64,000 nt of DNA, taken from the NCBI RefSeq assembly GCF_031769215.1, contig NW_026782330.1, positions 496,001 through 560,000 of the forward strand. Direction: 5' to 3'. Origin of the DNA: Ylistrum balloti (Eukaryota). A model generated the notes under the pieces. The model worked only from the letters and a program-made list of their open reading frames with translations. It did not search any database and was not told the origin of the DNA. Position numbers and translations under genes: made by a program. Numbering within the stretch: position 1 is the stretch's first letter; every line of letters begins with the position of its first letter. Positions 9,353 through 59,414 of this stretch are shown in pieces.

Positions 9353-10224
9353 AATAAAAGTAAGGAAAGTGTCCAAAACAATTTTATGATTACATGGTCA
9401 TGAACAGATATTCGTCCATCATGAATTAATTAGCTGTTAGTTTATCCAGATGTATTATGCTATGATACATATTTTGATGTTGTATGTGGGGAAATAGTAA
9501 GCCTGTTTGTTTTAAATCTTACATAAAACTGGTCTACTTCGGCCATTGTTTTAGCTTTTCAGCTCTAGCATCACACGTTTAGCCCACCTTTTATATCCCT
9601 CCTAGACACAGCAGAGTTTCCCCACATGCTGTTGTAAATCAGTAAATCATTGTCCAAACAACATTCTATCTGTCAAAAGAAAATGCATTTCTCGTTCCAA
9701 CTTTTCATTTTCAAGTGAATGTGCTACATGCTAGCAGCGGAAATAATCAATTTGTGTTTGCACCAAGCATGTCTTCGCAACAGTATATGGGATTAATTTA
9801 TGTTGGTTGTGAATATAACGGACTTGCCTAAATATGCATTCCGTTTATTTTTAAGTAGAAGGGATTTTAGATATTAATTAATTGAAAGTTTTCAGATATT
9901 AGTGGCAATAGATTTTTGCTATTTGTACTCTACATATATGTATTTCTCCGTCCATTCATGTCTACATTCTTTGTGAAACATGCAAAAAATGTGAAAACGC
10001 AACATTTTTATAGTTATAAATTATATGTAAATATAAGATAATTCAATAAATTAAGGTGTATACATTTGTAAAATAATATTCTGTGTTGTGTCATCTGTTT
10101 GTAATACCTGTTAACAAAGTCGTAGTGCAATGTGCTTGAGGACAATCTATAACAACTTACTTGTGAATCAGAGTAAGTGTGGAGAGACTGTAACTGCCAC
10201 ATACAGGTATGTAGCCTTTAGAGT

Positions 10225-16501: not shown

Positions 16502-17909
16502 TCTTAATAATTAACTGTTCTCCAAACTAAAACGACAAGAATAATTCGAAAAAACATCCATGTGCATGTCTGTTATGCCTTGTTTGATAGATACTGAGTG
16601 ACAATTACAAGCAAGTCCGTCAATATCCCTTTACCACCCAACTTAGTTATGCGCTTCAGCTCCATTCAAAGATTGAAGACTTCGGTAAACTCGCAAAACG
16701 TCGATAAACAGCATGTACTTTATAATTCAATACCACGGCCGAAACAGATTTTGATTTCAAGCCCGACAATGATCAGATATATGGACTTTGAAAAGGGTAT
16801 TGGTTGATGCATGAATAGAAATTAATCAGGATCACTCAAACAACAGTTCTTGGGCAGGAGTTGAACAGCAGGCGATGAGTTTGTATCAGTCAATGTAAGT
16901 GAAACAGATGTTCGGATATGATAGCCTCAGATCTCTCACCAATGTGTTTGGCATTTTATTCCGTTTAATAATTGGATTTATGAGTTGTTGATTACCTTAA
17001 ATAACTAGGTCATTATGGTGATATGAACCATTTAATCACGAAGCAATATCGATGATTCAGTATGACACCTGGCGCCACCTATTCTGCTACAACATGCTGT
17101 TTCGGCCACAATACACAGGTTGTGGATGTTATCTCAATAAATTCAATTTTAATCTAAAAAGATGGCTATTTTTTCTGAGACAAGCTCTTAAATCAATGAA
17201 AAAGTTACACATGATATATTTTAGTCCAAACAATATCATTGTTAACGTTTAGGTAGCAGACCACAGTCACAGCGCTTAGTTAAAAGGTCATGGTCACTCA
17301 TTGTCTTTTATGGAGAACTGGCATTCAGTTATCAAACGTCTATATCTAATAAATACACGTGACAGCGGCTTCACTGTATGGATGTATATGTATGTTGCAT
17401 GACCACGTGACTTTAACCATATGCCCAGCCATACATTTTTCATGCATGATCCGAGATCACGGCCCAAACAGAGCAAACGAAATAGTGATTAATATGACAG
17501 TGTATCAGATGAACGGTAAAAGCCCGTGATAGAATACTGTTATATTACTAGGGGCATAGAATTATGACTATTTCATCACACTTGAGATTATTTGTGAAAA
17601 ACAGAAGAGTTTATCATATTAGTTTGAATGTTTAATTTGAGATAAATGGTTAAATATATATTAGAGGAATTGTACGAAAGACACACAGGAGAATACACAA
17701 GTTTGAAACAGCAGTAGAGCCAGACTGTATGAATCAGTTGTTTCATCCCTAAAGTACGGAGCCCGTTAACTGACATGCTCCATACTTATTTTATTTCGTT
17801 TTTATTGGGAGAGAGATATTTACGATGTGACCACGATGGCGAAACAAGTATATTTAAAATTCCGGTCTAGGTGAGTTTTGTCAGTTACAATGATGTAAAT
17901 GTTTCCGGT

Positions 17910-27944: not shown

Positions 27945-36143
<8,199 letters not shown>

Positions 36144-36167: not shown

Positions 36168-38898
36168 TGCTGCACCGGAAACGTGGGAAGGGAGGCTACT
36201 CCATATCTCGGACCACTATTTTACATGTAGGAAAGAATAATAACTTGTGCTCCTTTTGATATTGAAAGCCCATCCACATTTCTACACAATGTTTTGAAAC
36301 ATATATGCTCAATATTTGTGACTTTTATAATTGAAAATTATGTTTTTTTTTTCAGGATTACAAGACTGATAAACCATTTGCTTTTCATTTACTCAGTACT
36401 CAGCTGGCTGAGGCCTACGTAGAGTACATACTGGGTCGCGATCATTTATCACGATTGTTTTACCAATTTTCGTACCTTTATAAAATATGGGCAAAAAACC
36501 ACATTGAATTTTACACGAATATAATACAAGTATTGCAACCATCGATTCATGCTGTTTGTAGTGATTTCAAAACTTAGAAGATATACACGTAGTTTCCCTA
36601 CTTATTCTGTAGTTTGATATCAAAACGATTTCACGCTTTTTGAAAGCTGATAAGACACTGATTTTCTATGCCTTCAAACGGTACATCTACTTGTGATTCC
36701 CGAGTCCTGAATCACAAAATTTTGATGGGACTCGAATGATTTGACGGGCTTCAAAATGAGACCCGGGAAAATAAATTGTACATTGATCACCGACCTTCGA
36801 ATAGCTAGGAATGGTTGTCGTTTCCATCGGATAAAAAAAGACAGCATGGACAATGAACATTTCCTTAAAACTGTGTTTGGCGCAGATCTCCTGGGGGACC
36901 ATCGCAATTCTAAGAAATTTCTCCGAGAGTGTGTGATATACCTACGATAAACATCCCACGCTTATTTTTCTTGAAAATATGTCGAGACACGGGTCACACC
37001 CTCCGATAGGAGGTTTCGCTTTAAATGACTGAGCCAAATTATATATATTCAAATCTCTACTTTTCACTTGAATTTTGTCGATTTCTTGTCTTTTGTTGTA
37101 TCTTAATCTGCGCAAGGGGAAAATAAAGAATGATGTATACGTACAAGGCATGTTAAAATGGTCTGGGAACTCATATGCAACAGAATAATTTCTTTATCGC
37201 ATCAAGTGGTTTACACGCAAAATGTGGATTCTTTAAACAAGAGACCCAATTGGTCTGCAGCGCTCATCTGGTATCTTCCGTAAAACCCCGTCAGGTTTCA
37301 TGAGATTTTCCATAGGTCACTTGCAATCATATCGACTGTAATTGCATCAGGAAAAGACAGTAGTGTGAAAAATAGGCTACATTTCAGCATGATCAAATAA
37401 AAAATCTCTGTTTACAAAACAACATGGTTACCTACCACTGCGATATACCACGTGGTATCACCAATATATTTCTATATGGAGGCTCCGTCTCAAAAATCAA
37501 ACAAATCGATATCAAATAACAATACTCAATTCAAAATAGTTTATTGAAACGTCACATGTAAACGCTACAGACATTACAATGTTTAAAAATATCTGCTCTA
37601 TTACACTTACAACCAGACTGCTATACAATTGACGAGACACTTGCTTTTCTTCTACCACACTAGACTGTCAGAGTGGTATATGATTACTCCTACCAGAGGC
37701 ACGAAACACTACAAATTTGTCCGAGTGTTAATACTAGAACAAACATAGCTACAACTTTTGTTGTTGTTACGTATACATATATAATTTAAATATTCGGTAA
37801 ATATTTACTTTTCAAAATCGGAATAGAATTTAGAGTTTTCCATATACATACCCCTAAAACATGCTCCAAACCACATGAAGATATTTTCAGTTTGATATTT
37901 TTTTTTCAAATGGAGTCAGGTGATCTTACCTGAAAAGACCTCTAGTGGTCAAACTTTACCAAATTCTTACGATAAACTGTTAAATTAACATAACAAAAGA
38001 CTCGTGTTTACTTCTGAATAAAGTTTTACAAGATGAAGAAATGATATGATTAATATCATCACAAACACTCTGCAATATATCAACTCAAAGACAATCTTAA
38101 TATATCATGAACATCACATCTCTATATAATTTACATCATTATACAGTGGACTTCGGGTAGTCCGAAAGGTTCTCACTTTTATTTTTCTTTTGGCGGGGGA
38201 CGATCGATTAGACTTAAGATTTATAATCACGACAATTACCGTTTAATAACTAGTTCTACACTGGATTGTAAGGGAAACAACTCTGATGTTAAGGGATAAC
38301 TCAAAGGACACGTACGTTAGTAGAAGTGGAACTCTTTTTCGTGGCGATAACTTATTGAAGTATCAAGTACCGATTTCCTTAATTCAAAATTGATTTTAAC
38401 ACTAAAAGCATGCTTAGGTTGATGATAATGTTACATGTGTTTAAATCATTCCTGCATTTGGAAGAAAAAATAATAACGTGCTCTAATAATAGAGCGGAAT
38501 TAAATACAATATGAGTGGGGGCGACATTACAGGGAAAGATAGTCAGTAGTATGATGACAGATTACCTTAACAATAAGTAACCTCATATACGCCAAGTTAG
38601 GAAGACGTATGTGTGATCCGGCATAGACATGATAATTATTGACCCACGACAGGCTGACTCGAGCTACTGATTTTGTGTAATTCTTTCGCAATGTGACCGT
38701 GTACACGCCCGGGTATGTATACAGGAGAGGTACCGTACCATGGCATGAGGACCGATTACCTATGGTCATTTAGCTTAGTCATCCACAGCCATGTTTCGAA
38801 GTGATTTGGTATGAACACCTGTACACGACATTGATCTTCTATCGCAGTGTTGCACTACACCTGTTGATTGGGAGAAAGATAAAGACGTGAACGGGGAG

Positions 38899-39304
38899 AT
38901 GTGGCCTGGCGGGGACCCCGACCTCCTTCTCACCGGCATATTTACCCTGTACCCGAAACCGGAGTACATGGTTCGTGTTTCATTGTCACCGTGGAGGCTC
39001 TCGTATAGAAACGTAGACGACGAAGCAAGAAGGAAGAACACAGTCAAAAGTGTCGACATTGGAAGTATTATTGGATGTCAGTGTCGTAAATCCAAGACCA
39101 CTGACGACCCTTTGACATATTTCACTGTATATGCATACCCCTCTCGCCACAAAACGTGCAGACCCTCCAAACGGGCTCGTGTTCGCAAGGCGATAACATT
39201 CGGTTGTAACAAGTCGTCCTCGCTCGAGGACAACTTTCGAACGTGTGCTAAATGGAGAAACGTCATATGTAGATTGGCAAAGGGCCAGCACTTGTCTATC
39301 GAAG
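38899..39304 (+). CDS. Sphingosine kinase alternative first exon 1a (N-terminal PH-like domain, 135 aa)
   Basis: MWPGGDPDLLLTGIFTLYP..IGSIIGCQCRKSK..YFTVYAYP..WRNVICRLAKGQHLSIE, ends GAA G|gtattt (phase 1), compatible with the acceptor at 47659. Confidence 0.8.
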
Positions 39305-40919
39305 GTATTTATATGCACTTACTGGTTCATAATTAAACTAAAGCGTTTAAGTTTTGAGTATACATTATGATGGTCATGCTCTAGTTCACTGCTACTTCAG
39401 TGGTACAGGTAAATTATTGATTCGTGTTCAACACCGGTAAACACAAACACTTGAGGGCACCATGACAACACAATCGCAATGTATGTACACAAAATAATAA
39501 GGAAAAAATAATGATATATAAATAGACAATATTAAAGAGGAGTGCTCGTAATTTTGAAATGTTCTAGTTTATATAACTATATCATATAGAACAGCATATA
39601 TATCACCGATACTGTCTTTCATATAACAGACTTTGCACAAAATAATGTTGACAGGTAGTGAAGATTTTCAAATAAACGGAATATGAGATCAACCAATCAA
39701 TACTCAAATACCATAAGAATTTCATCAAAATAGTATGACTACTTTTTATTACTTAATTCACAAGTGAAATGTTGATATAGTATTATATGCCTACGTACAA
39801 TATATTGTATGTATGCCTTGTTTCAGTCCGATTCCTCTTTCTGTAATCATAAAGCTTCGCTCTTTTTAGGCTTCGTCTTTTTCATGTTATAGTAATGAGA
39901 GTCGGTAAATTTAGTGACTTGCTAAAGTGACGTAATTTGGATTATGTACAATCCCTGGTGTCTTATTGGAACGTACTTGATATTACTTTGTGTGTCCGAA
40001 TTCAGTCCAAAAAAAAAAAAAAAAAGAACTTCCTGTCGGCATTCACAATCGAGTCCGTCTTAAACTAAATTCAATAACATTTGATAGCATTGACTTTGAC
40101 CAATTTTTATCAAAACGATTGCATTACACGATTCCCCCGTAGAGAGCAAATGGCTTTGCTGAAAAAGATTGTGTGGAAAGATTTTATATTTAAAACAAGA
40201 AAAGAAAAATCTGCTTCGACCTGTGACCCCGATGAAGCGTTGAATTCAATATTCTCTCTGTAGAAAACGGTGTCATCGAAATTTTGTATAGCTGGGATAT
40301 ATTATGTCCAGCACCTTAAAATCACGATGATCTAAGGAAACACAGTTAACACATATTCTTTTGGATTGTTTATAGAGCAGACTTCGGTAAGATCGAGGTT
40401 TGAGGTAACCCCTGAGTGTAACACAGACAAGTGGATACTTTTTGGCTTGGTCACGTGATCGCCCCACTTATAGACCATGACTGTGTAACTAAGGACTTTA
40501 TATAACTATCAACTTATGTACACATACTTATGCTCTTAAAACGCCTACTGGCAGGAAGATGGCTAACTCATACCTGTGACAAGAGAGAGAGAGAGAATGG
40601 GTGTGTTGGTAATGTAAATGGTTATATAACACGCTTCACACATTTTTTTAAAAAAATTTATTGCTTTGATGTCACGAGGGAAACCAAAAACAGACGTCAT
40701 GTGATCGAAACCAAATACGTATATATCACATGTGTTATATACGTCTCTGTGGAAACTTAATCTGCGAAATGAAATTCACAAAACATCAAATCACGAACTT
40801 TGCCTGTGATTATTTTTTCTGTAATTAAATTAAAATATGTACTAATAATTTTAAGAAAGTCCGCGAATTGTGAACAATGATCTAAGATATGTAACAGAGA
40901 TCCATACGACAAATAAAAT

Positions 40920-41703
40920 TTCACACGGCTAGTTAGTGAAAATCTTCGACACGGAAAAAATTCGACACGGCTAGTTAGTGAAACTCTTCTACACGGAAAA
41001 AAATTCGACACGACAAGTTAGTGAAACTCTTCTACATGAAAAAAAAAATCGACACGGCTAGTTAGTGAAACTCTTCTACACGGAAAAAAATCGACACGGC
41101 TAGTTAGTTAAACTCTTCGATACGGAAAAAAATCGACACGGCTAGTTAGTGAAACTCTTCGATACGGAAAAAAAATCGACACGGCTAGTTAGTGAAACTC
41201 TTCGACACGGAAAAAAAATTCGACACGGCTAGTTAGTGAAAATCTTCGACACGGAAAAAAATTCGACACGACTAGTTAGTGAAAATCTTCTACACGGAAA
41301 AAAATTCGACACGACTAGTTAATGAAAATCTTCTACACGGAAAAAAAATTGACACGACTAGTTAGTGAAAATCTTCTACACGGAAAAAAATTGACACGAC
41401 TAGTTAGTGAAAATCTTCTACACGGAAAAAAATTCGACACGACTAGTTAGTGAAAATCTTCTACACGGAAAAAAATTCGACACGTCTAGTTAGTGAAAAT
41501 CTTCTACACGGAAAAAAATTCGACACGACTAGTTAGTGAAAATCTTCTACACGGAAAAAAATTCGACACGACTAGTTAGTGAAAATCTTCTACACGGAAA
41601 AAAATTCGACACGACTAGTTAGTGAAAATCTTCTACACGGAAAAAAATTCGACACGACTAGTTAGTGAAAATCTTCTACACGGAAAAATATTCGACACGA
41701 CTA
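40920..41703. repeat. ~43 bp minisatellite
   Basis: Unit cgacacgactagttagtgaaaatcttctacacggaaaaaaatt, about 18 copies. Confidence 0.94.
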
Positions 41704-43111
41704 TGGATAGTCCGAACTCGAATACAAAAATAGCATGCCTTCGTCACAGATAAAAATATCTAACTGCTCAACATGACAAACATGGCTATCTATTGTCACG
41801 CTTGGACGCAAACAATAATATCTAACTGTTCGACACGGACAGAAATCCACACAGATATGTCATTTAGAATGAAATAAGAGTATTAGACACTCTTCTTCTT
41901 TTAGGCCTTTTAAAGCATATGTAAAAAGATTCATTGTATACAAATGGTAAATCCAGCAAGTGTAAGAAAAATCAAGAACTAGAAAACTAAGCATTCTTCA
42001 TTGTCGTCTGAGAAACCGAGTGAGCACTGTTAACTTTTCCGAGTGATAGCTTCAGCTGCGTGTCAATACATCCTTGTAAAGGTTCTTATCATTTTTGTTT
42101 TATTTGTCTTATATATGACAATTTCCGACTTGCACTAAGTACAGAATTAGCGAAACGCGTCTGCGAGGGATATGAAATAAGTTGGACTCTGTGCATTGGC
42201 ATTTTCCGCACTAGAGCTCTGAAACCGTTCAAGATGTCTATTTATAACCGCTTTGTACAGTTATCATGTTAGTTATCTTGAAGTACATTTTGATACGGAG
42301 ACGTTCTGCATTTTCTGTTACCATGGAAACAGGCTAAATTACAAATTTCGGTTTTCCCAGACAACAGCTCTGATACTGCTCAAATATCTACTCAAAACTG
42401 TACAGCCATCAAGCTAGCATTCTGCTCGTGCCTTTTGCTATAGAGGAGTTCTCATTTATATATATACATGTATATGTTATTACAGAGACAGGCAAAACTA
42501 CAAATGTTGCTGTCTCTGTAATAAAAGCCGTTTAAGATAACTTCCTGATACTTTAACTTTTCATCCCTCTCTTTAATAAATCTGTTGACGATGAAGGAGT
42601 TACCGCCATGGAAACCGATAGAAACGGTCAAAATTACAAATTTCACGGTTTCTAGAGCATGGCAAGAAAACCGTATCTGAAACTTTATATACTTCGTACA
42701 AGCTAGCGTTCTCTTGTGCTTCTTTTTCGTTTAGGATATTTTCTTTTGTTGTTGTCTGTCAAAAGTAATGTGTAAAGTAAGATGTTCTACGTCAGAATTT
42801 CTCTTCCTCAATTTTATGATGATGTGAAGAATATATGAAGTTCATCTGATAAGTCTTTAGAATTGTCTTCGCTTGAAATTGCCGAGAATTTAAAGGTAAT
42901 TTTGAGGTCAAGTAAATTCACACTCCCAATGGAAAACTATAAAATTTAAACAGAATAATACAACTCGCTTTACGCTATTTCCACTAAAAGACACTTAACT
43001 GTGTATATGATATGCTGCGGGTCCCAAGCGCTGCCTGTGCATCTTTAACGAAGAAAATATCTTTCCATAACATGTCACATGATCAAGTCACATGACACAC
43101 ATACATACAAA

Positions 43112-46100
43112 ATGGCGAGTAAAAAGTCGGAGCAGCTCCTGTTCGGTACATTTTCTTTGTATCCGAGGACAAGACCGTCCTTTAGGGTTTCACTGTCACG
43201 AATGGGAGTAACATATAAAAACATTGATGAATGTGACGAGAAAGACCAATGTGTCCGACACATAAATATGGGCGATATAGTCGGTTGCCGGTGTCGAAGA
43301 TCAAAAACGGCAGACGACTCAACAGCATACTTCACAATATATGCATATCCATTTCGGAAACGGACTATGAGTTCCAAGTTAACACGGATTCGTATGGATT
43401 TTACATTCGGATATAATGCTTCCCCTTCATTTGATGACAATATCCGAATATGTGCAGTGTGGAGAAACGTTGTGACTCGTTTGGCAAGGGGCCAAGATGT
43501 AGCGATGGAAGGTAGTGTTTACTAACACGTCAGTGATGAGTGTTACTTGTGTACTCGCAGCCATAGTGAACACCGGTATAAAGGTGGCCGTTATACAAAA
43601 AAGTTAATAACCATGAAAATGTCGCACTGGTGCGGCATGTTATATTTTACATATTCAATTAAGTAATAAACCTTAAAATGTCTTAAGTCATTGTAACTCA
43701 TTTTGAAGGAAGCCATTTATACATGCCAACATAAGAACACATTTATGAAACACATATTCCAAAACATTAAATGCATCAAACAAGCAGGATATATTACAAT
43801 TCATTGTTGATTATGTGTAGAAAAAAGTTTAAGTATTCATCCTGACATATACCATTAGTATACAAACCTACTGTTTGCTCAAAAAATAATTTCTTATTGA
43901 AAAACAATGGAATGATATTTAAATTATGTCTGAAGTTCAGATATCCCTTTGCATTTTGGTTAATAAGTTTGCTTTGAGTTTGATAATGCAAGCTATATTT
44001 TTCTTTCTTTTTTTTTTTACATTTTATTCAAGTGACACAATTCCACATAAAACCTCATTAGGTACCCCATCACATAGTGGCCTATAGTGATCGCCCTGTC
44101 TGTGTATCTATGCATCTGTCACCCACACATTTGTATCCACTTCATAACTTCCTCACCAATCATGGTAGTGCAATAAAACTTTGTATTCCTATTCACCATT
44201 AATGTTTCAAATACCAAAGTCCTGTTTGCACTGCAAAGGTCTAGTTCTCAAACTTTGGGCTTTTCATGGGACCTCTTTATTTACTACAGAAAGTTGTGTC
44301 CACTTAATCACTTTGTAAATTACTACATTTTGCCATTTCTTTCAATGAATATTGGTTTTTCATAGTTTTTTTAATCTTGGGTATAAAAATTTAGGCCCTT
44401 ACCATCACTGACAAGTCCAAGAAGGACAAACGTTTTTATGACACTGTTCAATTTATTATTTGGCACTAATGTATTCAATTATGAATTTGCATTCAAATGT
44501 GCTTTTTACTCGTGTGCCTTTTATAGATTCTTTGATATGTAACCAGTTATAGTTGATGGATGAAAATTTACATGATTGTTAACCGCTATGAGAGGGTGAA
44601 TCACAAACTTAATTTGATTTGTCCCTCAGGTCAAGGTCTTAAACTTTGGTCTTCCCATTGTAGCTGATATGATGAAAGTTGTATCTGCTCTACAACAGTC
44701 AGTTAAATCTTGCCCTTAGAGATGGTTTCTACTTCCATTTCATCTTGCAAACTTTTTTTATGTTGATTGGCATTGCTTTTTGTAACAGATTTTTTTTTTT
44801 TTTTTTGTTAGTATTGGTTTCACATTATCTGTATGCATTTACATGGTTCTGACTTGTTAAGGTATTTTCAAACACAATTTTCTAATTTTTATGTATTATT
44901 AAGTGTCAACTTGTAGTTTTATATACTTCATAAAAAACACAATTTGTATTTAGTGCCAGTCCACTTTTTTATCCTCTCTTTTTTGTTCCTGACAACTTGC
45001 ACACCACACACCTGTTATTATGTCATTCAGCTACAAATATTCATGCACATTTCTCCCCATGAAATGGTAACTTATACACATGTTACATGTATTATATACT
45101 ACTATAGTAATTTGCTGATATATAGTGTTGTAATCAGTTTTTAGCCCATCTTCCTCAGATGGTAGGTAATTCAGGTTTGTCCAATGACCATGGTCTGCTG
45201 TACATCTGTCCATAAACGTTTTTTGTTATCACTAGTTCTTTAGAAGGACAGGGTGGATTTTTCTCAAATGTAGGGTTTTCCATAATTTTGTTAGTAGTAG
45301 GCTGTGTAGTGAAAGTAGGAGGCTGGCCTGCCGTGTACGTGTAGTCGTGTACAGAACATTATTACAGAACTGGATTGGTGTAGGCGGCCAAATGATCAAA
45401 GTAGCCGGTCAAATTGGCCGTCGACCGGCTCTTATGGAAAACCCTGCAAATGGCCTACATAGGTTCCCCTTGGTCATTAGTTATGCTTTTTAGATTTTGG
45501 GACTGATCAGAAAAACAAAATGGTTGACAGGTGGCCATCTTTATATGATAAGAATTAAAAAAAAAACTCCAAAATTTTGATGATCACATATAGGTCAAAC
45601 AATGGTAGGTACCAGGATCGCTCTTGTACCTCTTATTAATAACAGCACACCTATTTCTTTAATGTTAAAGTAAGCTAACATTAAGTGAAAGTAAAACATA
45701 GGTGAATGTAAATCCAATACCAGTAGTATGGACTCAGATGATAAGACAGTAGTAACCCCAATATTTGATGCTGAAGGACTTTTTATCATTGGCACTAATA
45801 TAAACATATGTGCTAATGTTATTAAATTGATTTAATCATTCAAAAAACACCTGTATGATAAAAAGCTCACCTGTACCTATTAATTACTGTTTACTAGAGC
45901 TACCAACAAAAATGAGTAATGAGGCAAGCTGCAAATAATATTCCTTATCCCTGAAAAAAGTCCACACCAACTTCCATGTTGTCACTTTTGGTTAAGTGTC
46001 AATAATTAGACAGGAAATGGAATGTTAACATGTTTTAGATGGTTTTAGATTTTGGACCTTTGAGCTATAGAAGCAAATTTTCTAACTAATTAACTTCCTA

Positions 46101-49100
46101 GTTACAGGTAGGAATTCAAACCAGTCATCCTACATACATATCTGTGTGGTCAAGTTATCTAGGAGCTAAACGTGTGTTACCTATGTTTATATGAATTGGC
46201 ACCACATTGCCTTGCTATATCCTCAGATTTGTGTACTAAGTGGGACATACATAGTATGATCTTTCACTATAACCAATCTGAACCGGTAGTCAGTATTTCA
46301 ATTTTGTAGACAATCAAGCAATAAATATTTTTACTAGCCATTCTTAATACATTATTTGTATAGTTGGCTACAATTTGATATTATCAAGGAAAGATATCTG
46401 AGTGATATCGGTCACTCAGAGTTTATATCAACAAACAGTGATATCATCTGTTGTATTTAATTGTCATAGGGATGTGGAAATTCTAGACTTGAGGCCCCAA
46501 TTCCAGGGAAAATGCTGGATGCAGAGAGCAATGAGTCATTTTAAGCCATTTTTAATTCATGTCAAAAACTGACACTGCCATCCTATGAAAATTTGACAGA
46601 AAAAAAAAATGGAGGTTAGGTTTCAGCTTTGAGACTCTATGGTCCCCTACTAGATTATCACTGCATTCCTGCACTTAATCATTGCTTGAATATTTTTTTC
46701 TTTGATAAATAATTGGTTTCAGTGCCTCTCTACTGTAATGTGACATCCTTTAGTTACTTACGTGTATCGTGTAGCCTGCACTTCTAAATGACAAGTGTCT
46801 TTGTTGGATGAGACAGAAGGAGTGATGGGAAGCCTTGTGGTACTTATGCATTATCTCTTTCACAAATAGGCAACCAGGTTTTCATTCCCTAGTCTGACAT
46901 GATAAAGATCAGATACTTCCAACTTGGCGAAGAAAAGAGATCAATATGAATTCACCTAACTTGTTTCACTAATATTGTAGATGATTGTAGTTTAACATGA
47001 GATATGTTTCAACAGGTATAGAAAATACAGCTACATCTTGGACAACTACACCAACTTTTGCCCTCTGCTATATGGTAACAATCTCTTAGTCAAAACAATT
47101 GATATTCTTGTCAAGAAGGCACTGGCTTCAGTTGAAATTATGAAGGAAAAGTAGGGAAGAAGTTTTGCTCCATCAAGCTTCAAAAAATCCTGAAGTAATG
47201 ATAAATGAGAATGGAAGACTTTTTGTGCTGTCAGTGCAAGATGTTTCTAACTTGTCCAACCTGCTTGATACATTTAGAAGACATTTACACAGAACAACAT
47301 CTTAATTAAAATTAGATTATAATCCAGTTGTCTTGACGTAAAATCCACGAGGAAGATAATTCAGATGAATAGAAATATTTTGAAATCAGTACATTGAATA
47401 TTGTACAAGAAAAACCTGTGTGTTTCAGATCAAATTATCCCAATCTTAGGTTGACTGTCTCTGACATATTTGACATGTCTTTGATGTAAATCAGGTTTTA
47501 TTATAGAATATTTTGAATGAGATAAATTGATCTTGCTTATGCCTTTACATATTTGTGTTTTTGAAACAGAGGTGGCATCATAAACAAACACTTGAAACTT
47601 CATTAACTTGTAGCTATGGCTGAAAAGTCTAAAATGGTTACATGTGATTTTTAAACAGAGGTGGAGACATGCACACTACCGGAGTCTAAACGCTTGCTGA
47701 TCCTCATCAACCCACATAGTGGTCCCGGTAAAGCCCAACAGATATTTGAAAAGGAAGTAGCTCCAATGCTGAATGAGGCAAATGCAGATTATGAAGTAAA
47801 AATTACAGGTCAGACAACTTTTTTTTGTAAGGATGATATTAGCATATTGTTTAAGATGTAAAGGATAAAGGTCTTGACTCACAAAGGACACCAGTGTTCC
47901 TATGAACAGAATACTTGGAATAGATCATCAAAATGTACCTTATAAGGTAAATGGATTTCTCTTTTGAATTTAAATGGATATCCATTTTACTGTGGCTGGA
48001 TAGATGCAATGGTAGAGAATTGACAGATTTCAAAGTCCATCGGCAAACCAAAAATCATTTTCCTCTTCCCTTCAAATTCTGATACATGAACATTTCATTG
48101 TGTAAAAAGTCCATTATTTGAAATTTTGTTCAATGCAGTTTCAAAGATACAGTCGCATCAATGATCAAGTAAAAACCAAATAGACAGCCAAGGTTGCATG
48201 ACTTATCTCTCCTTGCCAAAATTCTTTATACAATGTCACCATTCTGACCTACATTTTGATCTCTGGCCGATATCAGAGGAAAGGTTTAGACTCCATCTCT
48301 TACACTATTTGTTACTGGAACTCACTGGAGATATGGGTTCACTTGTAGTGCATTCTTTGCATATAATTTCACATTGGTTGGGAGACTGTAATTTGAAAAA
48401 TTTTTTTGGTTGTTTTGTTTTTTCCAAACTATTGCATAGGATTTTTGTTTTTTTTGTAGAACATGCAGGTCATGCCACAGAAATCATGGTCAGTTTGGAT
48501 CTATCTCAGTGGTATGCTGTAATCATTGTATCAGGGGATGGACTGATATATGAGGTGAGAATAACAGATATACATAGCAATTCAGGTACTTCTGTCACCT
48601 GAGACAAAGTGTACAGAGTGACAGGTTACCCGTGACAAAGTGTAAGGGTGACAGGTTACCCGAGACAAAGTGTACAGAGTGACAGGTTACCCGTGACAAA
48701 GTGTAAGGGTGACAGGTTACCCGAGACAAAGTGTACAGAGTGACAGGTTACCCGTGACAAAGTGTAAGGGTGACAGGTTACCCGAGACAAAGTGTACAGA
48801 GTGACAGGTTAACCGTGACAAAGTGTAAGGGTGACAGGTTACCCGAGACAAAGTGTACAGAGTGACAGGTTACCCGAGACAAAGTGTAAGGGTGACAGAC
48901 TACCCGTGACAAAGTGTAAGGGTGACAGACTACCCGAGACAAAGTGTAAGGGTGACAGGTTACCCGAGACAAAGTGTAAGGGTGACAGACTACCCGTGAC
49001 AAAGTGTAAGGGTGACAGGTTACCCGAGACAAAGTGTAAGGGTGACAGGTTACCCGTGACAAAGTGTAAGGGTGACAGACTACCCGTGACAAAGTGTAAG

Positions 49101-52100
49101 GGTGACAGACTACCCGAGACAAAGTGTAAGGGTGACAGGTTACCCGAGACAAAGTGTAAGGGTGACAGGTTACCCGAGACAAAGTGTAAGGGTGACAGGT
49201 TACCCGAGACAAAGTGTACAGGGTGACAGGTTACCCGAGACAAAGTGTAAGGGTGACAGACTACCCGAGACAAAGTGTAAGGGTGACAGACTACCCGTGA
49301 CAAAGTGTAAGGGTGACAGGTTACCCGAGACAAAGTGTAAGGGTGACAGACTACCCGAGACAAAGTGTAAGGGTGACAGACTACCCGAGACAAAGTGTAA
49401 GGGTGACAGGTTACCCGAGACAAAGTGTAAGGGTGACAGGTTACCCGAGACAAAGTGTAAGGGTGACAGGTTAACCGTGACAAACTGAAGGGTGACAGGT
49501 TAACCGTGACAAAGTGTTAGGGTGACAGGTTACCCGAGACAAAGTGTAAGGGTGACAGGTTAACCGTGACAAACTGAAGGGTGACAGACTACCCGAGACA
49601 AAGTGTAAGGGTCACAGGTTAACCGTGACAAAGTGTTAGGGTGACAGGTTACCCGAGACAAAGTGTAAGGGTGACAGACTACCCGAGACAAAGTGTAAGG
49701 GTGACAGACTACCCGAGACAAAGTGTAAGGGTGACAGGTCACCCGAGACAATGTGTACAGAGTGACAGGTTACCCGAGACAAAGTGTAAGGGTGACAGAC
49801 TACCCGTGACAAACTGAAGGGTGACAGACTACCCGTGACAAAGTGTAAGGGTGACAGACTACCCGTGACAAAGTGTAAGGTTGACAGACTACCCGTGACA
49901 AAGTGTTAGCCTTTTGTCCGGCGTCTTGTGTTGTAAAACTTTTTACATTTCCCATATTCCCTGGGGCTTGAGGGGCGAGGCCAAAATGGATCAAATTGAC
50001 TTCAATTTCAGTTCAAAGATGTTCTACTGTTCATGGATGGAAGATTTTATATAGGAGAATTAAAAATGAAAATATTTGAGTTGAATTTCTTTTAATTCAA
50101 GCTTTGTTAGGAGCCTTGTCCAGCAGATAATGTAATGCACAGTTTATATTTGCATTATGTGTACAATGTAGCTAAAGTTATCTTTTCTTTTTAAACAAAA
50201 TCAATTTGACATGTTACAAGCAGCATAGTGACCGTTAAGGTCCTTGGGACTCTTGTTATGAATACACCTAGGATGTCTTTTAAATGCAAGATGGAATTGG
50301 AGCAAATTGAGCTTGTAAGTACAACAAAACAAATGAAAAAGCAATCGTTATATTAGATTCTTAACACCATGTTTGTTAGCATGATTACATGGGAAAAACT
50401 TTACGATAACATGTTAGTACGTTTGGCATGGGAAGTATGGTATTAAATGAGACATACACCTTGTGACCTGACAAAGGGAGGTAAGAGGATGGAATAACTC
50501 GGTGCCTGTACCAGTTAGTTTGGGAGAAAATTGATGTCCTGTTTTCTGAAAAGATCACTGAAAAGTTGAGGGCTGTTACCAGGATGTGCCATTATAGCTC
50601 AGTTAGATCCAAGTAATTTTTCATTGTTCATGGTGGCTGGTGTAAACTGTATATCAGAAAATGTTCATTTCAGGATACATTCACCCTTCAATCAACAAAA
50701 ATGTTTCTGACTATTTCAAAATTTATCCTTACCATACATTTTTACAGTAAGGAGTTGTGAAACTTTTATTGTGTTGCTAAATTCACCTCTCTTACAGGAA
50801 AAATGGACTCTCTATATATACATCATTTCTATTTTAAAAAATTATAAATTATAGATGCCATGCCTTTGTATGCTAAAATCTACTTATTTGATAACCTTTT
50901 TTCACAGACAATTAATGGCCTGATGAAACGACCAGACTGGGAAAGAGCTATCCAGTTTCCGGTGGGGTGTTTACCAGGAGGCTCCGGGAATGCTTTGTGT
51001 TGGACCATCAATTACTTAGCTGGGTAAGATTAGGGCCAGAAATAACTGTGTAAGCTGCCAAGTTTAATGGCTTTTTGAATTATGTACATTTTGTATGTAT
51101 TGAAATACTTGTTGTTTACTTTTTTTATTTAATATTGACAAAGATTATCAGAATGTCATTATTGGGTTAAAATAAAGAATGATAAAAAAATTGTTATTTT
51201 TTCCAACCAACTGGATATTTTACTTCTTTACTAACCTATTTAAGGCACTCTCTGTCACTTAAGACAAAAAATTCAAAAGGAAGGAGCCAACGTCAGGTAT
51301 AAGTAAGTGGGTGTTAGGTGGGTACTTCTCTGTGAGTATGGAGTCCAGACAAAAATTCTAAATCCATCTCTATAGACATGAAATCTGACATGATGAGATT
51401 AAGGTTTTGCTAAGTATTAACCTGTTGGTATCTTTACTATGAAGGTTGTTAAATAAACTTGACCATGACTAATTCTGAACATCATGGAAGTGAGATATGT
51501 TTCCAATACATTGGTTAACAACATAAAACTTCATTGGTAGATAGATTGCGATAAGGAGAGGTGCAGTGTTCAAGAACCTTAACTCTCTTTTGCATAATTT
51601 AGTACTTATTGAAACTTGGTGTATACATTTGTCATACTAAGAGATTGTGTAGTATACCAAATTCAGGGCCTGCAACTTCTAAATTACATAATTATTGCCC
51701 TTTGATTAAATTTCTTGTACAATAAAGCCATTTTCGGAGAGCATTTATCAGTTTCACTGATACCCCAGTTTTGTTTGTGTTTAGGGAGCCAGTAGGGGAT
51801 GAGATGGTTCTTCACTCGACGTTTATACTGCTGAAGCATCGCCTGATTCCCATGGACCTAGTAGTGATTCAGCTACCTACAATTCAGGTCTTTTCCTTTC
51901 TGTCTGTCACTTGGGGAATGATCGCTGACATCGACTTTGAGAGCGAAAAACTTCGGGCATTTGGAGCAGCTCGCTTCACTATCTATGCATTAATCAGAAT
52001 ACTCAGTAAGTGTGACCTCAATAATGACTTTTTTGGTCTATTGTTAGAATACTCAGTAAGTGTGACCTCAATAATGACTTTTTTGGTCTATTGTTAGAAT

Positions 52101-54072
52101 ACTCAGTAAGTGTGACCTCAATAATGACTTTTTTGGTCTATTGTTAGAATACTCAGTAAGTGTGACCTCAATAATGACTTTTTTGGTCTATTGTTAAAAT
52201 TCTCACTAAGTGTGACCTCAATAATGACTTTTTTGGTCTATTGTTAGAATACTCAGTAAGTGTGACCTCAATAATGACTTTTTTGGTCTATTGTTAAAAT
52301 TCTCACTAAGTGTGACCTCAATAATGACTTTTTTGGTCTATTGTTAGAATACTCAGTAAGTGTGACCTCAATAATGACTTTTTTGGTCTATTGTTAAAAT
52401 TCTCACTAAGTGTGACCTCAATAATGACTTTTTTGGTCTATTGTTAGAATACTCAGTAAGTGTGACCTCAATAATGACTTTTTTGGTCTATTGTTAAAAT
52501 TCTCACTAAGTGTGACCTCAATAATGACTTTTTTGGTCTATTGTTAGAATACTCAGTAAGTGTGACCTCAATAATGACTTTTTTGGTCTATTGTTAGAAT
52601 ACTCAGTAAGTGTGACCTCAATAATGACATTTTTGGTCTATTGTTAGAATACTCAGTAAGTGTGACCTCAATAATGACATTTTTGGTCTATTGTTAGAAT
52701 ACTCAGTAAGTGTGACCTCAATAATGACTTTTTGGTCTATTGCTAAAATTCTCACTAAGTGTGCTTTCAATAGGTCCATTTCAATCTTTTGCTAGAATAC
52801 TTGGTAAATGTACCCACTATAATGTGTATTTCAGTCTATTGTTAGAAATTCAGCAAGTGTGCCTTCTATAACATTGCTATACTTCCCCATTAAGTGTGCC
52901 TTCTATAACATTGCTATACTTCCCCATTAAGTGTGCCTTCTATAACATTGCTATACTTCCCCATTAAGTGTGCCTTCTATAACATTGCTATACTTCCCCA
53001 TTAAGTGTGCTTTCAACAGTGTCTGTTTCATTCTATTAATCTTATTTTCATCTTTAACATTCTTAAGTCAGTGGTAAATGTGAATTGATTCTGTTTTTTT
53101 TCTTGGTTTAGGTACATAATGTTTATACATATATTATCACAAGGAAATAACCCCTAATTACTAAGCAATATGCTTGTTGCATTGAAGTATTCTTTATTCA
53201 TTAAAGGACCTCGCAGCTACAAAGGAGAGTTGGCTTTTCTTCCAAAAGGACAATACACTCCCAAGACACAGCAGGCAATTGCCAAGAACACAATTCGTCG
53301 GATGGCCAGTCGTGAAACTGCAGGGTCAGTATGTGAGAATGGAGCAGTGGGAACCTATCGCACAATATCAGAAGACAGTGAGAGATTGCGATCAGTTTCA
53401 GTGCCAGTGATGCCAATTTCCAGCAGTAAACACAACTATGCTAAAGACAATTTGGGTATGGTGTTTGATGAGACTGTGAAAGAAGAGAATCTTTCTGACG
53501 TCAATGGGCACTCCAGCGGCCACCTAGATGAGCATACAGAGGTGAATGGCATGGGTGCATCAAATGTGAGCTTTGATACAGAAATAGGTGGTGCCAATGG
53601 ACCTGTGAATCATTTACAAGCCGATGATAATCGGGATCCTTCACAAGCTTCAGGCAGCTCACCCTATAGTCCCAACGTGTCTTGTTCTCTCCTTCCTCCC
53701 TTGGATAAACCTGTTCCTCCTGACTGGGTCAAAGTGAAGGGAGATTTCCTCACTGTTCTTGCTACATATCAGCCCTATCTAGGCCCGGACAACTTGTTCG
53801 CTCCTGATGCTAGGCTAAATGATGGCTGCATCCATCTTTTGTTTATTCGCTCTGGCATCACAAAAAAGACATTGTTGGAGATTTTTCTTTCTATTGATGA
53901 AGGAAACCATATTAATTCTCCTTATGTTGAATATGTGAAAGTGTCAGCATTTCGACTGACACCAGATGATTTGTCGATTGGAAATCTGATGGTAGATGGA
54001 GAACATGTGGACATGGCGCCAATTCAGGGACAAATATTCCCACAAATGGGTCGCATTATGGGTATTCAGTAG
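43112..54072 (+). CDS. SPHK2: Sphingosine kinase, SPHK2-like architecture (isoform using exon 1b, ~615 aa)
   Basis: Exons 43112-43511, 47659-47808, 48460-48554, 50908-51023, 51785-52005, 53207-54072, in phase, 1848 nt. DAGK-family motifs LLILINPHSGPGKA, VSGDGLIYE, LPGGSGNAL, SVTWGMIADIDFESEKLR, APDARLNDG, LMVDGE. Strict 1:1 orthology to SPHK2 is not established. Confidence 0.92.
44056..44650 (-). mobile_element. Degenerate HINE-like repeat fragment
   Basis: ttattaggtacccc..gtggcctatagtgatcgccctgtctgtg resembles the reverse-complement 3' hairpin plus microsatellite end of this class. Confidence 0.4.
45125..45565 (-). mobile_element. HINE-like fragment of the 25710/54075 family, interrupted by a MITE
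   Basis: Shares ctgtccataaac..ttttgttatcact and gggactgatcagaaaaacaaaatgg..ggtggccatct with 54075-54630. Confidence 0.6.
45271..45446. mobile_element. 176 bp MITE with ~15 bp terminal inverted repeats
   Basis: Left tagggttttccataa, right ttatggaaaaccctg; flanked by the direct repeat caaatg (45265-45270 and 45447-45452). Confidence 0.7.
48592..49907. repeat. 30-31 bp minisatellite in the SPHK intron after exon 48460-48554
   Basis: Unit gtgacaggttacccgagacaaagtgtaagg, about 43 copies. Confidence 0.96.
51996..52760 (+). repeat. 50 bp minisatellite derived from the SPHK exon end and 5' splice site
   Basis: Unit agaatactca|gtaagtgtgacctcaataatgacttttttggtctattgtt, about 15 copies; the first copy includes the true exon end at 52005. 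Confidence 0.96.
52853..53012. repeat. 37 bp tandem repeat, ~4 copies
   Basis: Unit aagtgtgccttctataacattgctatacttccccatt. Confidence 0.9.
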
Positions 54073-54630: not shown

Positions 54631-56429
54631 GGATATTAGGGACGGAGATATCAAAACACAGCTACATGTGTGTTATGATGTAGATTCTAACAAATACTCT
54701 CAGATTCTAGTACTAGTTTTCACATTTTTTAAATTCAGCATTTCTATTTCTTCCATTTAAGTGTTTAATTTACTGAAAAAATATATAAATAGACATATAT
54801 ATATATAAATGATTATCTATATATTTTAATATTTTTATAGAGATTCTGCTTTAAAAAGCGTTTTTCTATGACCATCCAAAATTTAAATGCTCTGTTGTAA
54901 GGTTATTGATTCCATAAGTGTTGAGTGTGATTGTGCGTACATTTAAGTGTAAAGTTTGGAATATATTCATATTATATTATAATGTGGGTATTAGATATGA
55001 TTATGTTTTTCTCCCTTGGAGGTATTATAAGTGAACAATTCTTATACGAAACTTAATCTGTGTTTGTATGGTTGTTATGTTAACCTGTATCAGGATACCA
55101 ACATTTGAACATCTGTGTTTGTGAATGTGAAGAGCAGACTGAATGTGTATGCAGTAACAGATATATAATGTGTAGCACAACGATCATCTTTTTATTTCTG
55201 GTATAAATGTGGATCAAATTTGTATTTTCACGTACACATGTTCTTTCTTCTGATGTTGAACTTTTCATTTCAAGGTAGCTGAGAGAATGCTTATTATTCT
55301 TTTATTATTTTTTTTTCATGATTTTTTTTTTTTAAATTTTTGTTGATTTTTATATAATTTTTTGACCTGTTTTGACTCTTGCTATTGTTACAGGGCATTA
55401 ACATTTAAGACACTCCTACCATCACCTGAATAACATGAATGGTGGGTTTAAGATGTGATTGCTGTATATCATGCCATCTTTTTTGTCAACTTTTTCTGTA
55501 ATGTAGGAGTTCATGTAAATAATGTGTTTGGAATCATCAAGGTAATATAAAGAAAATATATCTAGTGTACATAGTTAACAGTGAATGTTTATATCAGGGG
55601 ATACTGGTTTTGAATATCTCGGCTGATACACAGTGTATAACCAGGTAAAACTATTGAAAGGCTTGGCAAGTGTGATTTCTCTCATATAAAATATACTGCA
55701 ATCCAGTGTATGAAGTATATAGGTAAATTAACTTAATGTGAGAATTATTTACTGTGGATCGTGACATGGTTATGTACGCGATAGCACTTCAAATGCTGAT
55801 CAAAAGGAATGAACTACAGTAGGTAACCATTCATTAAAGCATACAACCATATAAGGTTTCGTGATTTAAAATGACAATAGTCAAAACAATGGCAGAAATT
55901 TATTATGACAAATTCATCTAAAATGCCATTTACCAAGTGTGCTGGCATCTTTTATTAGGCTTTTTAGGGTCATCAGGATTGGATATATAAAAATCATTAA
56001 ACATTGACATCTATATTGAAGTGATGATGCTGTGTAATATAGAAGGATAAAAAGCTATTGAAATTCAAATTACTCACTTCATTTTCTCTTTCCAGGTCAC
56101 TTAAATGTTATTAAGTTCATGTCCCCCCTTTTTTTTTGAATATGAAACAGAAATGTATTTATTATTAACCAAGCAGTTGAGATACCCTGTTGGTGTGATG
56201 GCCAAAGGTATGCCTACAATGTATTGGATAGGTAGCTCAATTATTGTCTTTCATTGTCAATGCTATCGTAGTTCATATGTCTATCTGTGCTTTGGGCTTT
56301 ATTGATGAAGGTGTGTGTATTACCTATAGGAATTATTTGTAGTCAGAGTTAGAGAGAACTTTGGTAAATCTATCACAGCCAAATGATCAGTGTCTTTTGT
56401 ACCACCACAAAGTAACATCAGTCAAAGTA

Positions 56430-58385
56430 AAATTATCTAGTTCTAAGGCTGCAGTTTGTGGGGAATGTAGACTACAGAGACACTGATCTAGTTCTGTGCC
56501 TGCAGTTTGTGGGGAATGTAGACTACAGAGACACTGATCTAGTTCTAAGACTGCAGTTTGTGGGGAATGTAGACTACAGAGACACTGATCTAGTTCTGTG
56601 CCTGCAGTTTGTGGGGAATGTAGACTACAGAGACACTGATCTAGTTCTATGTCTGCAGTTTGTGGGGAATGTAGACTACAGAGACACTGATCTAGTTCTA
56701 TGTCTGCAGTTTGTGGGGAATGTAGACTACAGAGACACTGATCTAGTTCTATGTCTGCAGTTTGTGGGGAATGTAGACTACAGAGACACTGATCTAGTTC
56801 TGTGCCTGCAGTTTGTGGGGAATGTAGACTACAGAGACACTGATCTAGTTCTAAGTCTGTAGTTTGTGGGGAATGTAGACTACAGAGACACTGATCTAGT
56901 TCTATGTCTGCAGTTTGTGGGGAATGTAGACTACAGAGACACTGATCTAGTTCTATGTCTGCAGTTTGTGGGGAATGTAGACTACAGAGACACTGATCTA
57001 GTTCTGTGCCTGCAGTTTGTGGGGAATGTAGACTACAGAGACACTGATCTAGTTCTAAGGCTGCAGTTTGTGGGGAATGTAGACTACAGAGACACTGATC
57101 TAGTTCTATGTCTGCAGTTTGTGGGGAATGTAGACTACAGAGACACTGATCTAGTTCTAAGGCTGCAGTTTGTGGGGAATGTAGACTACAGAGACACTGA
57201 TCTAGTTCTGTGCCTGCAGTTTGTGGGGAATGTAGACTACAGAGACACTGATCTAGTTCTAAGGCTGCAGTTTGTGGGGAATGTAGACTACAGAGACACT
57301 GATCTAGTTCTAAGGCTGCAGTTTGTGGGGAATGTAGACTACAGAGACACTGATCTAGTTCTAAGGCTGCAGTTTGTGGGGAATGTAGACTACAGAGACA
57401 CTGATCTAGTTCTATGTCTGCAGTTTGTGGGGAATGTAGACTACAGAGACACTGATCTAGTTCTAAGTCTGTAGTTTGTGGGGAATGTAGACTACAGAGA
57501 CACTGATCTAGTTCTAAGGCTGCAGTTTGTGGGGAATGTAGACTACAGAGACACTGATCTAGTTCTAAGGCTGCAGTTTGTGGGGAATGTAGACTACAGA
57601 GACACTGATCTAGTTCTATGTCTGCAGTTTGTGGGGAATGTAGACTACAGAGACACTGATCTAGTTCTAAGTCTGTAGTTTGTGGGGAATGTAGACTACA
57701 GAGACACTGATCTAGTTCTAAGGCTGTAGTTTGTGGGGAATGTAGACTACAGAGACACTGATCTAGTTCTATGTCTGTAGTTTGTGGGGAATGTAGACTA
57801 CAGAGACACTGATCTAGTTCTATGTCTGTAGTTTGTGGGGAATGTAGACTACAGAGACACTGATCTAGTTCTAAGGCTGTAGTTTGTGGGGAATGTAGAC
57901 TACAGAGACACTGATCTAGTTCTAAGTCTGTAGTTTGTGGGGAATGTAGACTACAGAGACACTGATCTAGTTCTAAGGCTGTAGTTTGTGGGGAATGTAG
58001 ACTACAGAGACACTGATCTAGTTCTATGTCTGTAGTTTGTGGGGAATGTAGACTACAGAGACACTGATCTAGTTCTATGTCTGCAGTTTGTGGTGAATGT
58101 AGACTACAGAGACACTGAACTAGTTCTAAGGCTGCAGTTTGTGGGGAATGTAGACTACAGAGACACTGATCTAGTTCTATGTCTGCAGTTTGTGGGGAAT
58201 GTAGACTACAGAGACACTGATCTAGTTCTATGTCTGCAGTTTGTGGGGAATGTAGACTACAGAGACACTGATCTAGTTCTAAGCCTGCAGTTTGTGGGGA
58301 ATGTAGACTACAGAGACACTGAACTAGTTCTAAGGCTGCAGTTTGTGGGGAATGTAGACTACAGAGACACTGATCTAGTTCTAGT
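56430..58385. repeat. 51 bp minisatellite
   Basis: Unit tagttctaaggctgcagtttgtggggaatgtagactacagagacactgatc, about 38 copies. Confidence 0.96.
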
Positions 58386-59414
58386 CGCAGCTTTCGATAG
58401 ACCAACTTGTTCTATGTAAGTCAATGGCCTAAATGTTGTGACAGAACTGATATAATATATATATGTAAATTGTTGATACAAATCATGCTTGTTATTTCGC
58501 AGTTACATGTAATGATATGGCACTTCTGCTCAATGTTTGTTATTTTTTATGCACTTTTTGTGTGATATTTTGAGTAATCAATATTTTTTCTATTTATAGT
58601 TTGTTGTCAGATTATGCTTTGTAAATTGTATGTTGTTCATAATTGGATATTTTATTTTTTAGATGCTTATCATGTGAAGTAATGTTTGCTTTGTATCTTT
58701 AATGATGGGTTGTTCCAGAAAGTTGCCATATATAATTAATTCTTGCTCACAAGAATGTCCATTCCCATCAGTGTTCTCATTCTGTTTATACACTTTAAAC
58801 CCAGTGCTTCTAATTATTTCTGTTTTTTGCAATGGGTCAAGTTAAGAATGAACCACCAAGAGCATGTTTTCTGTATAAAAGATGAAATATGGAGCAGCTC
58901 AGTACATCAAATAGTACATGCAGTGTTAATGCAGGGGTTGAAAATCAGATGTCAAGTTTTACATTTCATTGATTAGTATTCCGTTTCATCTATCAGCGTT
59001 AGGTACCACAGGTGTGAGTCTTTGTTTTTAGATTTATGCAGATATTGGAAATATTTTTTAAAGTAATGCAATGCCTTAGAATTACATTCCAAGGGAAATA
59101 TAACACATAATCATTTCTACGTGTTAATTTGTTGATGATTTCCACGTGTTAATTTGTTGATGATTTCCACGTGTTAATTTGCCGCGTGGTATTCAACAGG
59201 ACCGATTGTTTCATTAATCTCATAAATCCAGGGAAAATATCCCATCATAACACTAACATATGTTCATTCATCTTTATTTATTTCATAAGCTCCCTACATC
59301 CCTCCTGTGTACTTTGTAATATGTTTTGTGTACAGGAGGCTGTCTACATAAAATCTCCCAACGATATCAGCCCACCATCATTACAGGGTGGAATTTTTTA
59401 ATTGTATTTGGTAA

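Follow-up and report, generated by a model that had tools for sequence, protein, structure and literature searches.

Two paralogous first coding exons probably give a single scallop sphingosine kinase a choice between PH-like N-terminal domains

Why would a gene with a single catalytic body keep two complete versions of its first coding exon, and are both of them in use? The question is raised by a stretch of 64,000 nucleotides (nt) of the scallop Ylistrum balloti (NCBI RefSeq assembly GCF_031769215.1, contig NW_026782330.1, positions 496,001 to 560,000 of the forward strand), called here the window and numbered from its first letter, in which a sphingosine kinase gene is preceded by two homologous candidate first exons, 1a and 1b. 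Judging from splice phase, from conservation in a second scallop, Mizuhopecten yessoensis, and from the selection acting on each copy, both exons are probably used as alternative 5' coding exons of one kinase, each of them encoding a complete domain that is predicted to have a pleckstrin homology (PH)-like fold.

The proteins encoded by exons 1a and 1b are 48% identical (67% positives) over 126 residues, with a BLASTP E value of 2e-44. Both exons are free of stop codons from their ATG and both end in a phase-1 donor (GAAG/gtattt in 1a and GAAG/gtagtg in 1b) that suits the acceptor of exon 2 at 47659 (aaacag/AGGTGG). When either of them is spliced in silico to exons 2-6, a complete frame results, of 617 amino acids via 1a and of 615 via 1b, in a gene model that was checked by translation and in which all the exon borders are AG/GT. 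A tblastn search of the whole window with each exon found exon 1 exactly twice and every catalytic exon once. A first-pass annotation of the window, made from the letters, had anticipated much of this: it had put the identity of the two exons at about 45% by hand and listed motifs that they share, every one of which was found, and its description of two exons with their own ATG, no stops and phase-1 donors matching the single acceptor, upstream of one catalytic body, agrees with the translation, the splice borders and the single-copy state of the catalytic exons.

The identity of the body is given by several matches. Among the exons of the window, exon 2 matches DAGK_cat and exon 6 matches YegS_C in Pfam, and a 92%-identical orthologue matches the same two families with E values of 1.8e-24 (86 bits, for a cut-off of 23.6) and 4.4e-12, respectively. 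The best relative of this orthologue among solved structures is human SPHK1 (E 5e-80, over residues 139-349 and a C-terminal stretch), followed by weaker matches to acylglycerol kinase (6e-18) and DgkB (3e-6); a match of the body to CERK_C stays below threshold (E 0.027). Sphingosine kinases have the conserved motifs C1-C5 (NPxSGxGKA, SGDGLxxE, GSGNAL, the C4 block and DGE), which in the spliced translation read LILINPHSGPGKA, SGDGLIYE, PGGSGNAL, SFLSVTWGMIADIDFESEKLRAFGAARF and MVDGE, and the sequence relatives carry the names sphingosine kinase 1-like or 2-like in their source databases. By its sequence, then, the gene is a sphingosine kinase of the DAGK-type lipid kinase superfamily, the name already given to it in the first-pass annotation.

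What does the duplicated exon encode? Searched against Pfam, exons 1a and 1b match no family at E <= 1, PH families included, and a sequence search of the solved structures returned no match for the exon 1 domain, the first 138 residues of the orthologue being left uncovered. Among 1.84 billion representative proteins, a profile built from both exons gave 176 matches at E <= 0.001. Those that cover the full length of the profile are sphingosine kinases, from molluscs, an annelid, a nemertean, a spider, a shrimp, a tardigrade, a sea star, amphioxus, a shark and a bonefish, and many of the short ones are the same exon read through into the intron on genomic contigs. The AlphaFold2 model of exon 1b, based on an alignment of 92 sequences, has a predicted local distance difference test score (pLDDT) of 92.8 and a predicted template modelling score (pTM) of 0.85, and consists of a run of strands (nine segments according to DSSP) followed by a helix at residues 107-125; that of exon 1a, based on 11 sequences, has a pLDDT of 84.5 and shows its elements in the same order. 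This is the architecture that defines the PH-like superfold, i.e., a seven-stranded antiparallel beta-sandwich with a capping C-terminal helix.

With these models as queries, Foldseek returned five matches for 1b and nine for 1a at E <= 0.001, all of them PH-type folds. They are the PH domain of SIN1, the PTB domain of ICAP1, the PH domain of TFIIH p62/Tfb1 and the PH domain of anillin, and the weaker matches are nearly all of the PH superfold as well (FERM F3, the PH domains of Akt, BTK and Dbs, and the middle domain of Spt16); the template modelling (TM) scores are 0.5-0.59. The models thus support a domain that is PH-like by its fold and not by Pfam membership, in agreement with what had been proposed for both exons in the first-pass annotation, where structure prediction was named among the checks. 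As modelled, the N-terminal exon is a whole PH-like domain of SPHK2-type kinases, one that occurs across bilaterians and has no curated family.

The same pair of exons is present in M. yessoensis. The top profile match (P0001) is the M. yessoensis protein "sphingosine kinase 1-like isoform X2" (XP_021347415.1), which has a 1b-type N-terminus, and isoform X1 (XP_021347414.1, P0151), a member of the 90% cluster of X2, has a 1a-type one. Both run on into a common EVETCTLPESKRLL body, which is to say that RefSeq models both exons as joined to exon 2. In the corresponding genomic locus (L001, which contains 6,824 N), exon 1a lies at 10001-10415, exon 1b at 16128-16527 (6.1 kilobases, kb, downstream) and exon 2 at 31837, the donors being again of phase 1; the order of the three is that of the window, and the intron sizes differ. 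Between the two scallops the protein identity is 71% for 1a, 86.5% for 1b and 92% for the body. In a blastn comparison of the window with this locus, alignment is confined to the exons, to stretches of about 70 nt in front of 1a and about 50 nt in front of 1b, and to a pair of short extra blocks, one intronic and one just past the stop codon; the rest of the introns and of the intergenic DNA gave no alignment. The first ten intron bases after the donor of exon 1a are identical in both species. The intronic block (39370-39448, against 10517-10603 of the M. yessoensis locus) has 71% identity with an E value of 1e-5 and stands about 65 nt downstream of the 1a donor; it may be an element controlling splicing or transcription.

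Are both copies kept by selection? For the window against M. yessoensis, rates were estimated by the Nei-Gojobori method, with 2000 bootstrap samples and a Fisher test. Exon 1a has a non-synonymous rate (dN) of 0.174 and a synonymous rate (dS) of 0.748, i.e., a dN/dS of 0.23 (bootstrap 95% interval 0.13-0.39, Fisher p 1e-9); exon 1b has a dN of 0.069, a dS of 0.454 and a dN/dS of 0.15 (0.08-0.30, p 5e-10); and for the body, exons 2-6, the values are 0.039, 0.683 and 0.057 (0.036-0.082, p 8e-70). None of the 2000 samples for exon 1a reaches 1, the largest being 0.68. A comparison of 1a with 1b gives a dN of about 0.45, with saturation at silent sites. Another set of DNA reads from Y. balloti, covering 42900-48700, shows 36 single-base differences, none of which falls in exons 1b, 2 or 3. 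These estimates support purifying selection on both exons between the two scallop species, as expected from the old duplication with selection on both copies that the first-pass annotation had put forward. Neutral decay of exon 1a, which it had named, for the population, as one of the findings that would speak against this, is ruled out at the between-species level because dN/dS is low and because the donor and the upstream block are conserved.

The upstream sequences of the two exons differ. That of 1b has in common between the two scallops the sequence ATGTCACATGAT(C/T)AAGTCACATGAC, which holds two TCACATGA boxes 13 base pairs (bp) apart; in the window they stand 17-37 nt ahead of the ATG, and in the M. 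yessoensis locus they lie at about 16093-16113. A tandem TCACATGA/TCACGTGA pair, 16-50 nt before the ATG, is found at M. yessoensis 1b, in the P0152 lineage (L003), in Sinanodonta and in two oyster contigs; with a spacing of 13-14 bp in L003, L004, L007, L009 and both scallops, it is conserved among a freshwater mussel, oysters and scallops. TCACGTGA and TCATGTGA are CLEAR and M-box sites of the MiT/TFE factors, and the TCACATGA boxes look like MiT/TFE-type M-box or E-box sites as far as they can be predicted, which hints at a MiT/TFE-type control of the bivalve sphingosine kinase. Upstream of exon 1a the pair is missing in both scallops, and the block there holds no TCACRTGA box; there is a conserved sequence specific to 1a, ACATTGATC...ACTACACCTGTTG, at 38828-38866. 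The conservation implies that 1b would have retained an ancestral bivalve upstream element, which fits two separate promoters, and the block that exon 1a has of its own suggests that it may be under a different transcriptional control. That each exon 1 has its own promoter is thus rather likely, at a lower confidence than the use of both exons.

Table 1. Positions of the kinase gene features in the window and of the neighbouring gene
Feature	Positions	Strand	Content	Basis
Conserved block upstream of exon 1a	38828..38898	+	ACTACACCTGTTG at 38854-38866; putative core promoter or 5' untranslated region of the 1a transcript	blastn block
Exon 1a	38899..39304	+	ATG + 135 codons + 1 base; faster-evolving copy of the PH-like N-terminal domain	
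Exon 1a donor	39305..39314	+	gtatttatat, phase 1	blastn block with M. yessoensis ends at 39314
Conserved block upstream of exon 1b	43063..43111	+	two TCACATGA boxes at 43075-43082 and 43088-43095	blastn, alignment
Exon 1b	43112..43511	+	ATG + 133 codons + 1 base; conservative copy of the PH-like domain; donor GAAG/gtagtg, phase 1	
Exon 2	47659..47808	+	common acceptor exon, phase 1 in and out; DAGK-type catalytic domain begins (LLILINPHSGPGKA)	conserved in M. yessoensis
Exon 3	48460..48554	+	SGDGLIYE motif	translation, blastn block with M. yessoensis
Exon 4	50908..51023	+	PGGSGNAL motif	translation, blastn block with M. yessoensis
Exon 5	51785..52005	+		translation, blastn block with M. yessoensis
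Exon 6	53207..54072	+	variable linker and C-terminal beta-sandwich (YegS_C), to the stop codon	Pfam, translation
Ribosomal protein L18 gene	31124..36207	-	head-to-head with the kinase gene; ATG near 36143	open reading frame, Pfam call for the neighbour, blocks common with L001

The way in which the locus would work can be outlined as follows. An ancient tandem duplication of the first coding exon left two copies, both of which were retained; depending on whether transcription begins at 1a or at 1b, it would then give one of two mRNAs and, from it, a protein of 617 or 615 amino acids, the two products having a common catalytic body and different N-terminal modules. In the transcript that starts at 1a, exon 1b would be intronic. 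Close before 1b there is a single AG (43086-43087); no pyrimidine tract accompanies it, and a splice from 1a to this site would bring in an in-frame stop, on which grounds a tandem reading of 1a plus 1b was rejected; since 1b has no usable in-frame acceptor, the choice between the two exons would be exclusive by construction.

In the intron between 1b and exon 2, the segment 45228-45615 reaches a contig depth of thousands to tens of thousands in a DNA run, which marks it as a very high-copy repeat. A tandem array with a unit of about 50 bp (51996-52760) begins at the donor of exon 5 and repeats the end of that exon together with the donor in more than 12 copies according to tblastn. Two long minisatellites, one within intron 3 (48700-50000) and one beyond the end of the gene (56387-58420), give rise to spurious long open reading frames on both strands, an example of which has 672 amino acids, lies on the minus strand and consists of QCLCSLHSPQT repeats.

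Could the two exons depend on one shared promoter, for instance an old bidirectional one next to the ribosomal protein L18 gene, with a non-coding leader spliced to either 1a or 1b as mutually exclusive internal exons? L18 lies upstream of the kinase, on the opposite strand, in both scallops (357-5174 of L001) and in Sinanodonta (L009, 1-9855), where the two genes are head-to-head with their start codons just 146 nt apart, so this arrangement has something to recommend it: the old neighbour is still in place in both scallops. In the window, however, the L18 start codon is 2.7 kb from that of 1a and 7 kb from that of 1b, and the ancestral box pair adjoins 1b, at the far end of that 7 kb. Besides, nothing aligns between the block at the L18 promoter, which ends at 36207, and position 38828. 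Neither ATG is preceded by a conserved AG with a pyrimidine tract (the tatcgcag of the window is ctgcgg in M. yessoensis), and the coding sequence of exon 1a in M. yessoensis starts 12 nt further upstream, within the same conserved block. A shared promoter is therefore considered improbable.

Other explanations concern exon 1a itself, which might be separate from the kinase body and expressed alone as a small PH-like protein, or might be a disused relic in slow decay in Y. balloti. Its frame does remain open for 10 codons beyond the donor, up to a stop at 39334-39336, within an open reading frame (38887-39336) of 149 amino acids when counted from an upstream GTG, and purifying selection on the domain would be expected of a stand-alone protein too. 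Against such a protein, the phase-1 donor is conserved along with ten intron bases, is in the same phase as that of 1b and fits exon 2; RefSeq splices 1a to exon 2 in M. yessoensis, and no 1a-type protein standing alone was found among the proteins of 74-236 amino acids that were searched. Independent expression of 1a is accordingly given very little credence, and the same low standing is given to the relic. In favour of the latter, exon 1a has changed faster than 1b (dN of 0.174 vs 0.069), has lost its upstream ATG and was supported by no RNA run in the run searches. Against a relic, the bootstrap distribution of dN/dS stays below 1, the frame is intact in spite of a synonymous divergence of about 0.7 per site, both the donor and the block upstream of the exon are conserved amid neighbouring DNA that cannot be aligned, and nearly all of the residues invariant in the family are retained in 1a.

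The use of both exons as alternative starts of one kinase is hence the preferred reading, and several observations weigh against it. Exon 1a is under weaker constraint than 1b and evolves about 2.5 times faster. Its first ATG has been lost in the window: in M. yessoensis the exon opens with ATGTACGGGGAGATGTGG, for which the window has GTGAACGGGGAGATGTGG at 38887-38901 (GTG for ATG), so that translation here would start 4 codons (12 nt) downstream of the M. yessoensis start. Neither exon 1 donor carries the consensus G at +5. Searches of sequencing runs with exon 1a, and with exon 6 as a control, returned one run and no transcript run; the contigs of that sole run covering the locus are colinear across the introns, and it is DNA for that reason. 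Protein searches for fragments spanning the junction found none, the junction piece of X1 giving catalytic-domain relatives and nothing else. The M. yessoensis isoforms X1 and X2 are automatic RefSeq models, and the separate promoters are read from short conserved blocks in just two species. As for the remaining protein searches, exon 1a alone had no match in the range of 74-236 amino acids. Region 1-140 of X1 had none either, a result of little weight given that the 90% cluster of X2 takes in X1.

When did the duplication take place, and which copy is closer to the original? Sinanodonta (L009) and Solemya (L010) have a single N-terminal exon each in the gene and the 10 kb upstream of it that were examined, and the oyster contigs are too short for counting copies of exon 1. 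In the trees, scallop 1a and 1b form one clade (support 99/95 and 97/96), whose sister is the bivalve lineage P0003/P0152. The branch leading to 1a has about double the length of the one leading to 1b, and 1b is nearer than 1a to every outgroup. From these trees, the duplication is older than the split of the two scallops and, within the bivalves, most likely occurred on the side that leads to the scallops; its date is approximate because an alternative tree that pairs 1b with P0152 is not rejected by the approximately unbiased (AU) test (p 0.14). An exon with a phase-1 donor on a metagenome scaffold (P0039) was tried as a third 1a and rejected: it groups with 1a, not robustly (AU p 0.30), its branch is very long and its upstream CACGTGAC box resembles those of single-copy genes. 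Metagenome scans returned nothing. Gene conversion was considered for the stretch FGCN..SSS..NFRTCAKW, which the window 1a has in common with M. yessoensis 1b; the retention of ancestral residues, together with extra changes in the window 1b, explains it equally well.

What would the cell gain from the two modules? The four scallop exons all agree at 46 positions; at 32 others each type has a fixed residue of its own, and a further 36 positions vary in 1a only and 15 in 1b only. The fixed differences include the N-terminal lead-in (GDPDLLLTG in 1a vs KKSEQLLFG in 1b), the stretch before GC.C (KS.DI vs HINMGD) and the helix (NVICRLA vs NVVTRLA). Both modules are strongly basic, with a net charge of +9 to +13, and a basic hairpin after YAYP reads RHKTCRPSKR in 1a and FRKRT-MSS in 1b, being also the least confident part of the 1a model. 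The nuclear localisation signal of mammalian SPHK2 is located in the equivalent hairpin. These 32 type-specific residues mark the surfaces likeliest to set localisation or partner choice. For SPHK2, signals for nuclear localisation and for export are described, as are isoforms with different N-termini (PMC8160245). By comparison of the two modules it is plausible that the two scallop isoforms differ in targeting, and one may speculate that the paralogue-specific residues, the basic hairpin among them, provide different localisations or partners.

Put together, the locus might be a natural domain swap, in which 1b kept the ancestral boxes and the ancestral PH-like module, and 1a acquired its own new promoter together with a module set apart by 32 fixed differences, basic hairpin included, so that the same kinase would be sent to different compartments or partners depending on tissue or state. 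This complete scenario is tentative, and somewhat more likely to be wrong than right. Were it true, SPHK2-type kinases would be defined as having a PH-like domain, common to bilaterians, that is as yet without a curated family. Structural knowledge is very scarce for the SPHK2-type N-terminal region, for which there is now a confident PH-like prediction, in two versions on one scallop core. The two upstream regions are a case of promoter divergence after exon duplication that is open to testing and, in more practical terms, the gene models of scallop genomes should retain both first exons.

How does this compare with what is known? The closest case is the X1/X2 pair of M. yessoensis, which is the same gene with the same pair of exons, in the same order and phase and with a common exon 2, and differs in belonging to another species (dS about 0.5-0.75), in the intron sizes and in an exon 1a that starts 4 codons earlier. 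A literature search gave nothing on scallop sphingosine kinase isoforms, on XP_021347414.1/XP_021347415.1 or on a PH-like SPHK2 N-terminus. The first-pass annotation's statement that the arrangement is undescribed therefore holds for the papers searched, in which the M. yessoensis pair is not discussed, and it does not extend to databases, both isoforms being already present in the automatic RefSeq annotation of that species.

Vertebrate SPHK2 (SPHK2a and SPHK2b/SK2-L) has, like the scallop gene, an N-terminal region before the DAGK-type core, and the profile search finds the exon 1 domain in shark and bonefish kinases too; the N-terminus of human SPHK2 shows the same motifs. The difference lies in how the isoforms arise, by an N-terminal extension in mammalian SPHK2 and, as proposed here, by a swap of paralogous copies of a whole domain in the scallop, and we know of no duplicated exon in vertebrate SPHK2. 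Ceramide kinase (CERK) has an N-terminal PH domain and a DAGK-type catalytic domain, that is, the domain order of the scallop kinase within the same lipid kinase superfamily. The body of the scallop enzyme is, however, clearly that of a sphingosine kinase, and the likeness to CERK lies in the domain order, with a PH-type fold in front of the kinase.

As a genetic arrangement, the locus resembles the arrays of variable first exons, such as UGT1A and the clustered protocadherins. In these tandem-duplicated arrays, as is predicted for the scallop gene, homologous tandem exons of the same phase are joined to the same constant exons, and the first exons are mutually exclusive because a first exon has no acceptor. 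The scallop gene differs from them in having two copies only, in belonging to another enzyme family and in swapping a complete PH-like domain. Tandem exon duplication is well known as a source of alternative exons, and the scallop kinase is, by its sequence, one more member of this kind, with two modest additions: a PH-like domain of bilaterians for which there is no curated family, and an ancestral pair of boxes kept by one copy only.

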